A stretch of 64,000 nucleotides of DNA from the NCBI GenBank assembly GCA_977016875.1, contig CDRNST010000188.1:186001-250000 (forward strand), given 5' to 3'. A model generated the notes under the pieces. That model searched no databases. It was not told where the DNA came from and saw only the letters and a list, made by a program, of their open reading frames with translations. Source of the stretch: Pavona decussata (taxonomy: Eukaryota). The position numbers and the translations under genes are program-made. This document shows, piece after piece, positions 12,477 through 18,400 of the stretch (positions within the stretch are counted from its first letter, which is position 1; each line of letters starts with the position of its first letter).

Positions 12477-15400
12477 GACATCTGAAAATGGTTAGACTTT
12501 CTAGTCTTCTCGGATAAGGACGATAAACCGTACGTCCCGTCTTACAACACTTCAATGTTCATAACCCTGTGGGACGTTAAAGAACCCAGACACTAATCGT
12601 AAAGAGTAGGGCATGGAGTTCCCGGTGTGCTGGTCTGGTCTTTGTTCTGTTTCATGATTTCATGGGTTGGGAGGGTAGGATGAGGTCGCTAATGGACATA
12701 TGCTGATGTAAACCACATTTGAATATACATGAAAAGAAAATGCGGTATATAAATGTATTACCATTACCATATTTTTCTGTTTTATTAAATTACCTCTGAA
12801 CATTCCATCTGGTCTGAGCTATTCTAGCTGCAATAGCTACATTGTTGAAAAAACAGTAGCCCATGGCAAACTCAATATCAGCATGGTGACCAGGTGGCCT
12901 ATTGACAAATGGCAGAAACAAAAATACAAAAGATCAGGACCAGGTGATGGTATATATCAAACAATTTATTAATAATTCATCAATAAATAATTTATTATTA
13001 ATTAAAACAGACTGGATGGATGAAAACCTGGGGTGGGGGGACTCTCATATTTAAGTGACAGGGGTGCTCATTGGAAATTTGAACCTCTGAAAGGTACCAG
13101 TCAGAATTCTATTTTGTGGGCGTGACCAGTCCAAACAGCTTTTCACCCCTAAGAGGTACATGTACCAAATCAGCTGACGGACATTACTTCCTCTCATATT
13201 GTTTGACTCAATACCCTTAAAGGTACCACCATACCTCTGAGCACCCTTGGGGGTACCAAACCATGAATTTTAACCCGTCGCTTTTATATGGGAGTCTCCC
13301 CCCCCCCCTCCCCCTGGGAAACCCAGGTCTGTGGCTTTCAGGGTCTCTTCAGAATGGATCAACCAATTAACAGCCAGGAAGTCACAGAATTAGGTACTGA
13401 GTAGGCACATGCTCACGTCTAATTATGTCCTCATTGTGACAGTCAAGCATTTTTAACAATCATGAGCCCCTGGCTCGGGAGACTGGGGGACCACTCCCCA
13501 TGTTTCGACTTTAAATAAAATTATAGCTTTATACCTTTATCTATCTGAGAAGTCAACAGTTATAAGTGTAATGTTGGCTAGAGCAGTTTTCAATTTTATC
13601 TTTACCACACTCTGCAACTTGTTAGCAAACTTTGCGCCTCAAACCACAAGAAACAAAACAAAAACAAATTGTTACGTGTTCACAAGCTTTTCCCATGCTT
13701 GGGGCCAGTTACAGGTATTTGCATAGAGTTCTAATTGGTTTATTATGTCGATTATAATATTATAACCAATGGACCATTTTTCTGAAAGGAAAATGTAATC
13801 CTTGCTTTGACTTCTCTGCTTCTTCTTTGACTTCTCTGACAGTATTACTAGTGCTGTAATAAATATATGTCATTAAACAAGTGTGAGGTCCGTATCAGGA
13901 AATATTTGTTGATTGAGTGCTTTTTTTTTTATTTTTTGCAAGTTTATGGACCAAGCCGAAGACGAAGTCCGTAACCTTGCAAAAAAAAAAAAAACAAAAA
14001 AACAAAACATTACAAAAAAAAAAATCAACAACGCACCGCATTGTAATGCAACCTCCATGTCCATCTTAGCGAAAAATTTGGACCACTCAGGGAGCCAATC
14101 AGAATGTTCCTTTTTAAAGCAGACCAGTTCAGCTATGTTCTATGTTATAGCATATACATACCATTATTGTAGTGTATTACTATAGCATACGTACCTGACT
14201 ATGGCTACTGCATTTTGGACCTGGAAGAAAGAAAAAAAATTATCTCACAGACCTCATCAAATGTTCATGTTTTCACAATTTTGTTTTCAAATATTTGCTA
14301 GAAAAAAGGATGCTGTAAAGAGAAAAGTTGCTTGTTTGATATTTGTTAGAAAAGCACTTCAAAGTCCTCTCTCACTTATTTATTGCTGCAAAATACTGCA
14401 ATTCCTACAAAAGTAATGAAAGTAATTTAAATGATTTATAATTTGCAGTAAATGGTACTATAAATTTTTAAAGTAAAAAGAGTTTTTTGTACCTTATTTG
14501 TTACAACAGCTTCCACTGCAGCTATAGTGCAACCACAGGCAAGACAAGCACATTCACAAGCATGCTGATAAACAGAGAAGAAAACTTCATATTTAAGACA
14601 CTGACCTTTATGATGGTGGGTGAGGTGGGGGGGATAATAAATCAAACTGGGTGGAAGATTTCAAAACAATTTCCATAGTCAATGCTGTTCATTGTATCAT
14701 GTGCGCAGATAATCCATGAGAGAATGCTTAAATAAATAGTGTGCAAAGTTATCCAACCATGGTCAGATAAAAGTTAAACTTAATAATACTGATAATTGAC
14801 AACAAAAAACATGATAAAACAGTAAAGCTTCACTTATATGCTAAAAATGACCTGAATGATATCTTGTCTGTCATTAATGTGATATGCATGCACCAAGAGA
14901 ATTATCTGTTCTGCAGTAGTTACCTGACTATAGTAAAAGTCAGGTTCAAAGGTTACTTCTTTTCCTTTGGCATACAGTTTTTCATACGGCATTGTCTGAG
15001 TTGCTGCCATGTCCATGAGATGTTGCTGACTGGCAATAATGAAAACAAACCGCTAACTTTTATTCCAATAAAATATTTTCAATTATCGACAACCAGAGTG
15101 AGACTACAGAGAACAGAGCATGGCTTCTGGGTAAAATAATTTCCAGTATATTCACCCTTGAAATATACAAGGTCAATAAGCATTTTATTCAGATACTATG
15201 GTAGCCTAAAGTAGCCTCAATAAGCTGGTTGACTGTGCATTTTGAATATCCCGCAAGACTGGGGAAAAAATAATACTGAGGTGGATTATATTCAGCAAAG
15301 TAAAGCTGGAATTGTCCACACATTTACGCTCTTTATTCACAAGAGTAGTCCTCACCTCACTCATGTAGACAGAATCATAATCACATGCTCCTATGTTAAA

Positions 15401-18400
15401 CAGTTCCTCTTTTGACATGGTCTGCGTTGACTTCATCTTGTTAACATGAGCTTCACTGTTAATTATTGCATTATGAAAAAATTAATATTATTGCAGACTT
15501 AATGTAGCACATTACGAAATCACCGATATTTCATTTTTAGGTCAGATGACTTATTTTTTGGTTGTATTATTATTAATAAGTATAAAAACATTTAATATCC
15601 AACATTATCATTGGAGAAAGTTAATGTTAAGGTTATGGGTTTTAAAAAGCATTAAAGGACATGTAACATGCGCTGCAATTTAATCCACGCCCAACAACTA
15701 ATCAAAGGCATTCAACTCAACATACAGCACATGTAGCTTTGCAGGCTGTGAAAACAGTGAGGTTGTCAAAAACTATTTTCTTTGGGACTGAAGGGATGGG
15801 GTGGGGGGTCATGAGAGGAGGGGGAAGGCTAGCTCAATAATTACAGAATTTAAATAAGGCTACTATTATCATAAAAATAATAATTTGTTACTTTAAAACA
15901 GTAGTCAGTATTGAAGCACATGCATGGGTGAACTAAAAGGACTCATCCAAAAATCATACTGTTCCTGTTCTTATGTACTGTATTTAGTCTTGATATAACT
16001 ATGTTAACGTTTGCTATGATTTTTACTCTCAGCTTTAAATCAGCTAATTTAATACCACAAGGAAGCACAGTGTCTCTACCAAGTAAGGCTGATGTCTTCC
16101 CAGTTAAGCCTGCCGCACACTTGAGGAAACAGCTGAGCAAACTCCCTTGCAGGGCATCGTGAGGCAATCAGCTGAGCTCTTTCCTCAAGTGTGAGGTTGA
16201 GTTTTCGTGAGAATTTCACCTCGCGAGATGAAATCTCAGATATCAAACACGACAGATATTTTCCTCACGGACTCGCAAGGCGAAAAACTCACGAAAACAA
16301 AACCGCACACATGATGAAACAGCTGAGCGATATTCGCCTCGTGAGGCAGTTTGCTCAGCTCTTTCCTCAAGTGTGCGGCAGGCTTTAGCTATGCAGTCCT
16401 GACTCTCTTGACTATCCAAGATGAGGGAAGTTTGCTGGGCAATAAATTCAATGTTTAGGTTGAATCATTGAATAATAATTATTGTATTAACATAAGGCCA
16501 TCCGAAGTTCTAAGAAAATTTTAATTCAATAAAATTGATAATTAATTTTTTATTCATGAGCTAATACCTGTGTTGACTCAGTAGCTCTTCATCAGTAGCA
16601 AACCGAGACTATAAAACATGGGAAATATTCAAAAAATATTTACAGTAAGCTAATGCCATTTTAAACTAAAGAAGGATGTTCATTTTCATTTGAAAACATA
16701 AGGAGCTCTAAAATACCAAAAAGAATAACTTTTATTGTAATAGCAACTGGTGCAAAGACTGTCAGTGTTAATTAATTACCATAACTAAAAAAAAACAGTT
16801 TGTCACACTGCACAAGGTACTAATTAATTTAATTTTCAAACAAACAAACAAACAAAAAATATTGTAATTGCAAACTGTTCCTATTAATATAAAAAAAATC
16901 CTATGTGTTGTCTTTACGTATAATTTGATGATATAATGTAGAATGTAGCTCCATAAAAAAAAAAAACTAAAACTTACTGGAATTTCCTGGCATCTTTCAA
17001 GGAGACCATACTCTTTGTGTTTGTGATATGGCCGTTGAATTCTGTCAGGGACTTCTGGATGAGTACTAATAAAAATAATAATGTAAGAAACGATTTAGAG
17101 AAACATTTCAACAAGAAAATTAACGATAGTGAAACAGCATGACGTTTCGTTTCCTTTCGTCATTTGACAATGACGATATGAAGACGTCGAAACGTCATGC
17201 TGTTTTACTATCGTTAATTTTCTTGTTGAAATAATGTAATAAATTAAATCCTGAACTAAGTTTCTTACAAGTTTATTTGGAGTAATTTAATGGATTTTAA
17301 CCCAGAAAATCCTACTTAAGGCAACAATTTGTTACAAATGTTGTGCATGATGTCAGGTAAAATGTCATGGAATGCTGAAACATAATTATGTTAAAACCCT
17401 ATGACAATCACTGGTGCAGACTAATGAGTGTTGCATTTTGTGTCGATATAACAATAGGAGCCTCAGAAGTCTGAAGTGACAGTCCTAAAGTGACGTGTTA
17501 AAGTTTTGCTGTTTACATTGATATATCATATCAGTATTCTTATATCAGTCAGACTTACCTGTCCCATACATTAAAATGCTTTTTCATCCTTTCGTCAAAG
17601 ACAATTCCAGTCCTAAAATTTCCAGAAGAAAACTATTAATTATTTTCTTCAAATTTGATCCTTTAAAAAACAATACACATATATAGCATGTTCTTAATAG
17701 CATGCTTGGGCAAATACTTTTGACTTGTTTCCATATTCATTACTTCTGTTCTTTCTAAGTCAATGTTTTCTCTTCTACACCAAATGTATAAATTTCTCTC
17801 CACATCATTTCATTTTATATCATCTATTACAAAAATCCAACTAAACAATTTCTTCAAATTTAAACACTTTTATTAGCTCATCCATTTTCCTATTAATAAC
17901 CTTTCATTATTTACAGTGGTACCTTTTCATCTTTTCTACAGTTTCACTGACAACCTGAATTTTAAACGGTAAAAGAAAAAATATTACATTTAATTTAGGT
18001 AACCCCCTCATGTTTATTTCTATATCATCACTGTCATTGAAAACAAGGATAATGGCTGAAGTCAACAATTAAAGCCTTTCAAACTTATACATCATAAAAG
18101 GAAATTGATCAGGCTTGTGATAAGTGCACAGTCACCTTGGTTTTCTATGCACTTATAAGAAGAAGGACAGCAGATTGTCACACCAGAAGTCGTTTTAAAT
18201 GTAGAGCCCCTTGAGTCACATAATGGATGCTCAGGGCCGGCCTCAGGTGTACATGTAGTGGTATCACAACATTGTGGGTTCAAGTCTGCTTCAAGCTTTA
18301 ATTTAACCCTTTCCCGTCCGAGGGAAATGGCAAATTTTTCTAAATCACTAACTATGAACTGGGAGACTACATGTGATATACCATTTAAAAGGTATTTTCT

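Follow-up and report, generated by a model that had tools for sequence, protein, structure and literature searches.

A probable mutually exclusive exon pair at the active-site loop of an HDAC6-like deacetylase gene in the coral Pavona decussata

Does a coral deacetylase gene choose, for each mRNA, between two versions of the exon that encodes its substrate-recognition loop? The question is raised by a stretch of 64,000 nucleotides from Pavona decussata (GenBank assembly GCA_977016875.1, contig CDRNST010000188.1, positions 186,001 to 250,000 of the forward strand), which was analyzed as a whole and is called the window here; its first letter is position 1. An earlier note, made from the letters alone, had proposed that two adjacent exons of an HDAC6-like gene, here named 5A and 5B (or A and B), are mutually exclusive. 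This core proposal is directly supported by the layout of the exons and their frames, by the junctions of A, by RNA contigs with B spliced at both sites, and by purifying selection in the frame that B alone would use. We consider it probable that 5A and 5B are a tandem-duplicated, mutually exclusive pair in an HDAC6-like, apparently single-domain deacetylase of stony corals. The pair and its shared neighbors are as follows.

16568..16608, minus strand: exon 4, 41 nt, the shared upstream partner of A and B (sequence and RNA contigs).
15455-15356, minus strand: exon 5A, 100 nt, the canonical version, with the YDSVY loop motif at its end.
15029-14924, minus strand: exon 5B, 106 nt, the alternative version, with K-x-V-T-F-E-x-D-(F/M)-Y-Y-S-Q at its end.
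14493..14564, minus strand: exon 6, 72 nt, ending in ...VVTNK, the shared downstream partner (sequence and RNA contigs).

Could both exons be used by the splicing machinery, and could they be used together? They are neighboring, homologous exons of equal phase, each with its own splice sites. They are separated by 326 nt, both are stop-free, and each has AG before it and GT after it. With slashes at the exon borders, the minus-strand contexts read ...aacag/T...GAG/gtgagg for A and ...ttgccag/T...CAG/gtaact for B, and the pyrimidine tract of the window's B is the better of the two. Exon 4, which ends in ..CACAG, supplies two bases of a split Ser codon to either A or B, and the exit phase is 0 for both. 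Lengths, splice sites and identical phase are thus as the earlier note had described them, and the translations of both exons match its peptides exactly. In a scripted frame test, the A-only and B-only joins stayed open through exons 6, 7 and 8, while the A+B join met a stop inside B, 15 codons in, and skipping both exons led to a stop in exon 6. Since A and B are each 1 modulo 3 in length, the reading frame forbids both-in and both-out, again as had been claimed. A search for RNA pairing of the docking/selector type found short AT-rich arms only (15462-15486/16541-16565 and 14791-14802/15076-15087), which we took as chance because the introns do not align between species.

RNA evidence came from assembled contigs of RNA-type runs; runs X1, X2 and X8 belong to three studies (P1, P2 and P4). 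The joints 16608->16978, 16568->15455, 15356->14564 and 14493->14220, all GT..AG, were present in RNA contigs. The two junctions that link exon A to exons 4 and 6 (16568->15455 and 15356->14564), both predicted by the earlier note, were found in contigs of all three studies. The joined contigs are exon-A mRNA.

For exon B, two contigs (X2 record 12, 163 nt; X8 record 28, 135 nt) contained exactly 14924-15029 with zero mismatches, at record positions 30-135. The match stops at both splice sites, and beyond them the contigs have foreign letters: 29 upstream in X2 and X8, and 28 downstream in X2. Unspliced contigs differ in that they continue into the intron (X1 record 5, X8 record 27). The overhangs were interpreted on the assumption of assembly words of 31 letters (k = 31). 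Since A and B both begin with T and end with AG, an exon4-B-exon6 bubble arm then gives 29 nt before and 28 nt after B. The exon-A arms (X2 record 13, X8 record 30) have the same 29-nt 5' overhang, and their joint to 16568 is listed. Exon B spliced at both of its sites was thus seen in contigs of two studies, and the direct joining of B to exons 4 and 6, as predicted by the earlier note, is what the overhang lengths suggest. Depths of the A and B contigs are of the same order and are not fit for ranking the two.

How are the two peptides related? A and B reached a BLOSUM62 local score of 47, which was attained by none of 5000 shuffles. It was also the best score when set against 1581 other stop-free frames of the 64-kb window, the next best being 38. 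Comparison of profiles built from eight orthologues each (hhalign) gave a probability of 91.8% and an E value of 7.5e-7, covering the first 22 columns only. The common part, in the first two thirds of the segment, reads H-x-x-x-M-x-x-T-Q-T-M-x-x-E-x-L. The last third is unalignable: A carries C-D-Y-D-S-V-Y there and B carries K-x-V-T-F-E-x-D-(F/M)-Y-Y. Relative to the A loop, that of B has two additional residues, a conserved motif of its own and an invariant Asp. The homology asserted by the earlier note hence holds for the first 22 residues and does not extend to the last third, and its residue-by-residue equation of D-S-V-Y with P-D-F-Y had to be dropped, the loop being unalignable in the profile comparison. 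Its view that the swap exchanges the loop in which the acetyl-lysine-binding Ser lies was borne out. The best solved match of exon A, zebrafish HDAC6 catalytic domain 1 (CD1), extends up to the YDSVY motif.

Is exon B conserved, and in which frame? Genomic contigs of relatives were reached through open-frame calls on coral DNA in protein collections. About ten further coral lineages or alleles carry exon B (L002-L011, L017, L019, L020-22/L028, L023, L026 and the open reading frame [ORF] calls P0011 and P0015), 300-900 nt downstream of exon A, and it was seen in the whole series of ORF calls P0011-P0015. Some of the contigs L002-L011 derive from mats of black-band disease on Caribbean Orbicella, Pseudodiploria or Montastraea (PMC5394123). 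The intact exon is constantly 106 nt long and stop-free, with AG, pyrimidine tract and a GTAA donor. The introns around it are unalignable between species, and identity starts and ends at the splice sites. In L001, which represents another genome of this species or of a sister species, exon B is identical to the window's.

Pairwise ratios of nonsynonymous to synonymous substitution (dN/dS) were 0.04-0.24 for exon B (Fisher p down to 4e-7) and mostly 0.05-0.28 for exon A. When three phylogenetically independent pairs were pooled, exon B had a ratio of nonsynonymous to synonymous proportions (pN/pS) of 0.30 (p = 2e-4). Invariant residues make up 19 of the 35 in exon B, the loop Asp among them. 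Across most related corals, both exons are accordingly under selection, as the earlier note had suspected. Between the two coral clades, synonymous divergence (dS) of exon B (1.1-3.6) far exceeded that of exon A (0.3-0.6), a difference that rests on about 19 synonymous sites and may be noise; it could also reflect faster change or past gene conversion.

Several observations weigh against a working pair, and we collected them here. The RNA data are assembled contigs and not raw reads, the partners of B are read from overhang lengths, the joints listed being those of other exons, and the contigs are shallow (depths of 3.8 and 5.0 for B and of 13.7 and 6.2 for A). Run X1 has only an unspliced piece over B. 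In the protein collections, no protein or fragment with B in spliced context was found under a query-length filter of 0.55-1.75x, which excludes full-length proteins. Word searches with the exon-B frame, the exon-A frame and a spliced N-terminal fragment (P0009) returned only genomic or unspliced ORF calls, and an exhaustive search of representative proteins with exon B gave seven matches, all of them intron-flanked ORF calls on coral DNA. A scan of Joint Genome Institute (JGI) metagenomes and metatranscriptomes yielded five contigs, every one unspliced around B. Against all solved structures, exon B matched no HDAC, either singly or as a profile of eight orthologues; its sole match was BRD9 at an E value of 0.88, which is chance. 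It is thus only by way of exon A that B can be recognized as homologous to HDACs.

Three lineages are moreover without a working exon B. In L018, which sits in the window's own clade in the exon tree and whose exon-B DNA is closest to the window's, a 5-nt insertion makes the exon 111 nt long. There, a retroelement with a poly(A) tail (L018:10058-12140) is inserted about 70 nt downstream of exon B. The target duplication that flanks it is unusually long, at about 115 nt, and comprises the 3' half of B together with the first part of the intron; the 5-nt insertion arose later, in the upstream copy of this duplication. L027 has an in-frame TGA as the second codon of B. In L012-L016, from Tara Pacific coral metagenomes, the intron is 330-344 nt long and exon B is absent; a search for a remnant gave a local score no better than that of shuffled intron. 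In a midpoint-rooted tree of 396 nt of shared exons, the B-less lineage is nested among B-bearing ones, a placement that does not distinguish late gain from loss. Finally, pN/pS of exon B within the window's own clade was 0.37-0.58, and constraint on B may be weaker there. The earlier note had said that its proposal would fall if exon B were unspliced and also absent or broken in relatives. Overall this is not what we found, yet the second half of it applies to these three lineages.

Two side observations belong to these contigs. At L018:14647-14985, the start of the PPGHH exon and its acceptor occur four times in tandem at a spacing of 80 nt, and only the last copy runs into the full exon; the array may reflect partial duplication of the exon in tandem or an error of assembly. 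The JGI contigs L008, L009 and L010 (positions 1-120 onward) resemble partly spliced pre-mRNA in which the intron between exons 3 and 4 is gone and the introns around A and B are kept, which hints at late splicing of the alternative region.

The losses, the looser constraint within the window's clade, the lack of a B-containing protein in any collection searched and the lack of a spliced B contig in X1 would all suit the idea that exon B is the relic of an old exon duplication, now being lost and spliced as low-level noise, with no function of its own here. The window's own copy does not look decayed, however: it is intact, has a better pyrimidine tract than A and is identical in the same or sister species L001. 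Furthermore, B contigs reach depths of the same order as those of A in two studies, constraint over the wider tree is strong, and length and splice sites are invariable in the approximately ten intact copies. We therefore regard a relic as unlikely.

Much less probable still is that exon B acts as a poison exon, included after A so that the premature stop lowers gene output via nonsense-mediated decay. Joint inclusion does place a stop in B, as seen in the frame test, and conserved alternative exons that trigger decay are frequent in regulators. However, an A-to-B joint would give a 30-nt overhang, not the 29 nt observed, which fit an exon 4-B joint, and no A-to-B joint was found among the joints listed. 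B is also homologous to A. In addition, substitutions in B spare the amino acids of the frame in which B replaces A, for which a poison exon offers no explanation; since the constraint lies in that frame, it speaks for a translated B-only mRNA. The poison-exon idea was rejected on this codon-level constraint and the contig geometry. A chance open frame with chance splice-like sites, for which one could cite the shortness of B (35 codons) and an A/B identity of only about 38%, has a negligible probability and is refuted by the shuffle and whole-window controls, the hhalign result, the spliced contigs, a cross-species island of conservation bounded by splice sites, and dN/dS.

What enzyme would the exclusive pair modify? 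The remaining exons of the gene were placed as follows.

19418..19465, minus strand: the first coding exon, with ATG at 19465, 16 residues (tblastn of the spliced N-terminal fragment P0009).
17559..17612, minus strand: exon of 18 residues (tblastn of P0009).
16978..17065, minus strand: exon 3, ending in ...CQEIP (joint 16608->16978 in X1 and X2, a variant in X8; bounds by tblastn).
14195..14220, minus strand: exon 7, a 26-nt micro-exon encoding VQNAVAIV plus 2 bases (joint 14218/14220->14491/14493 in X1 and X2).
12797..12898, minus strand: exon 8, PPGHHA..., with the tandem catalytic His (PF00850, E 2e-12).
11928..11996, minus strand: exon 9, with the zinc ligands Asp and His in a 15-residue motif stretch (PF00850).
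6719..6845, minus strand: exon 10, ending in ...NVPWNK (Pfam; match to HDAC6 in the PDB, E 4.5e-28).
5997..6065, minus strand: exon 11, bounds approximate (tblastx against L012).
5196..5257, minus strand: exon 12, start approximate, with the zinc-ligand Asp and Lys at the gatekeeper position (Pfam and sequence).
3317..3406, minus strand: exon 13, 30 residues (solved-structure match).
2858..2967, minus strand: exon 14, with the catalytic Tyr of the GGY motif (sequence and relatives).
2414..2485, minus strand: exon 15, approximate, the end of the catalytic domain (tblastx against L012 and L019).

One small exon between 19418..19465 and 17559..17612 was not located, and two more small conserved pieces lie near 2057-1980 and 1610-1554. 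Four exons match PF00850, the arginase-deacetylase fold, individually (E 2e-12 to 3.6e-5). The tandem His, Asp-x-His, the Asp of GFD and the Tyr of GGY (GGYNL) are all in frame and form the full catalytic and zinc-binding set. HDAC6 is the top solved match for exons A, 10 and 13, ahead of HDAC10 and class IIa enzymes. The gatekeeper after GFD...GDP is Lys (GDPK/G) in the window and in all relatives read, whereas HDAC10 has Glu there; near the N-terminus the motif is HPEVPDR, and there is no P(E,A)CE helix like that of HDAC10. These motifs and matches identify the gene product as an HDAC-family zinc deacetylase of the HDAC6-like type (class IIb), in agreement with the earlier assignment.

The protein starts only about 27 residues ahead of the catalytic domain. 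The window holds one catalytic motif set and ends about 1.5 kb past the last conserved piece, and no second set was found in the 5.6 kb downstream of the domain in the compact relative L012. The enzyme thus seems to have a single catalytic domain, although a second one farther away is possible. The comparison drawn by the earlier note, in which splicing provides here the diversity that HDAC6 gets from tandem domains, is a gloss.

Exon 6 and the introns of the gene gave further side observations. Between the window (14493-14564) and L001 (L001:2560-2631), 4 of the 24 residues of exon 6 differ, though the sequences are otherwise about 97% identical. Where all other lineages read have Arg, Cys is found in the window (HACECA-C/R-LACG). 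At 8250-10405 on the minus strand, within the intron that separates exon 9 from exon 10, a long ORF (10405-9560, 282 aa) has the look of a PIF1/Helitron-type helicase (VVIDEASLV...), and more long frames come after it. In the intron upstream of exon A, 16106-16385 resembles a miniature inverted-repeat transposable element; its inverted repeats are nested, with 42-nt arms of 95% complementarity. RNA-type contigs cover it at depths of hundreds to thousands with many variant joints, and it is likely one member of a large repeat family that is expressed. Repeats of high depth are also present at 13191-13337 and 14073-14219.

How would an exclusive choice between 5A and 5B change the deacetylase? 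Each mRNA would contain exon 4, then A or B, then exon 6. Transcripts with both or neither would stop early and would probably be removed by nonsense-mediated decay, and only transcripts with one of the two would yield full-length protein. The swapped last third would form the loop at the entrance of the active site, as in HDAC6 and HDAC8. Isoform A would retain the HDAC6-type Asp-Ser motif, while in isoform B the entire loop would be exchanged for a longer one. Isoform B may be an active enzyme and may favor other substrates or partners than isoform A.

Comparison with characterized deacetylases bears on this last step. HDAC6 has Ser at the loop position, and HDAC8 (D101), HDAC1 (D99) and HDAC10 (D94) have Asp; this residue binds the backbone of the acetyl-lysine substrate (PMC5454378, PMC10157890). 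In HDAC8, D101 also makes an ionic contact that affects specificity (PMC10157890). Like HDAC6 CD1 of zebrafish and human (PDB 5G0I, 5EEF, 6UO4), the coral enzyme has the PF00850 fold, all catalytic motifs and a gatekeeper Lys, which corresponds to K330 in zebrafish and K353 in human CD1 (PMC10157890), and the YDSVY motif of isoform A is identical to that of zebrafish CD1. Unlike HDAC6, the coral gene shows no second catalytic domain within the 5.6 kb downstream covered in the compact relative. Its later exons (10 and 13) score higher against HDAC6 catalytic domain 2 than against CD1, and the coral domain may be orthologous to either. With HDAC8, HDAC1 and HDAC10, isoform B shares a loop Asp, which is invariant and falls on the Ser of isoform A when the exons are lined up from their 3' ends. 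That this Asp stands in for Ser in the manner of HDAC8 or HDAC10 is a guess, as the 3'-end line-up is unsupported by the profile comparison. The loop of B is two residues longer than that of A and aligns to no solved HDAC. Unlike HDAC10, the coral gene has neither the Glu gatekeeper nor the P(E,A)CE helix.

The most likely effect of the swap would be a change in the substrates or partners accepted; it is possible that isoform B is inactive or regulatory. A more specific proposal, which we put forward only tentatively, is that the isoforms are enzymes for different substrate classes or sequence contexts, and that the coral switches the specificity of one deacetylase by splicing. One conceivable form of this switch is a Ser rim in A and a longer Asp rim in B that favors cationic or non-peptide acyl-amines.

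Is such an arrangement known? PKM exons 9/10, FGFR2 IIIb/IIIc and SNAP25 5a/5b are classical mutually exclusive pairs that arose by tandem exon duplication. The coral pair is like them in that homologous neighboring exons, equal in phase and each flanked by splice sites of its own, would be used one per mRNA and swap a functional segment. It differs from them in that the coral exons are unequal in length (100 and 106 nt) and each 1 modulo 3, that the swap hits the active-site rim of a deacetylase, and that the pair occurs only in a subset of stony corals, some of which have lost it or carry it in broken form. In the full-text literature searched, no mutually exclusive exon in an HDAC catalytic domain, no alternative loop exon for HDAC6 and no splicing-based specificity switch in any member of the HDAC superfamily was described, and neither was this coral gene; annotated full-length proteins were out of reach. 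The mechanism, mutually exclusive exons by tandem duplication, is thus known and the coral HDAC pair is new, although existing annotation of both isoforms is possible.

Coral gene models with exon A only would miss the second isoform. Exon B is furthermore a case of exon birth and death, being common to deeply split coral lineages and mostly constrained, yet deleted, frameshifted or stopped in three. The pair offers access to the role of a single-domain HDAC6-like enzyme in a cnidarian, and two enzymes that differ only in the loop that grips the substrate would be a natural matched pair for testing how this loop sets specificity.

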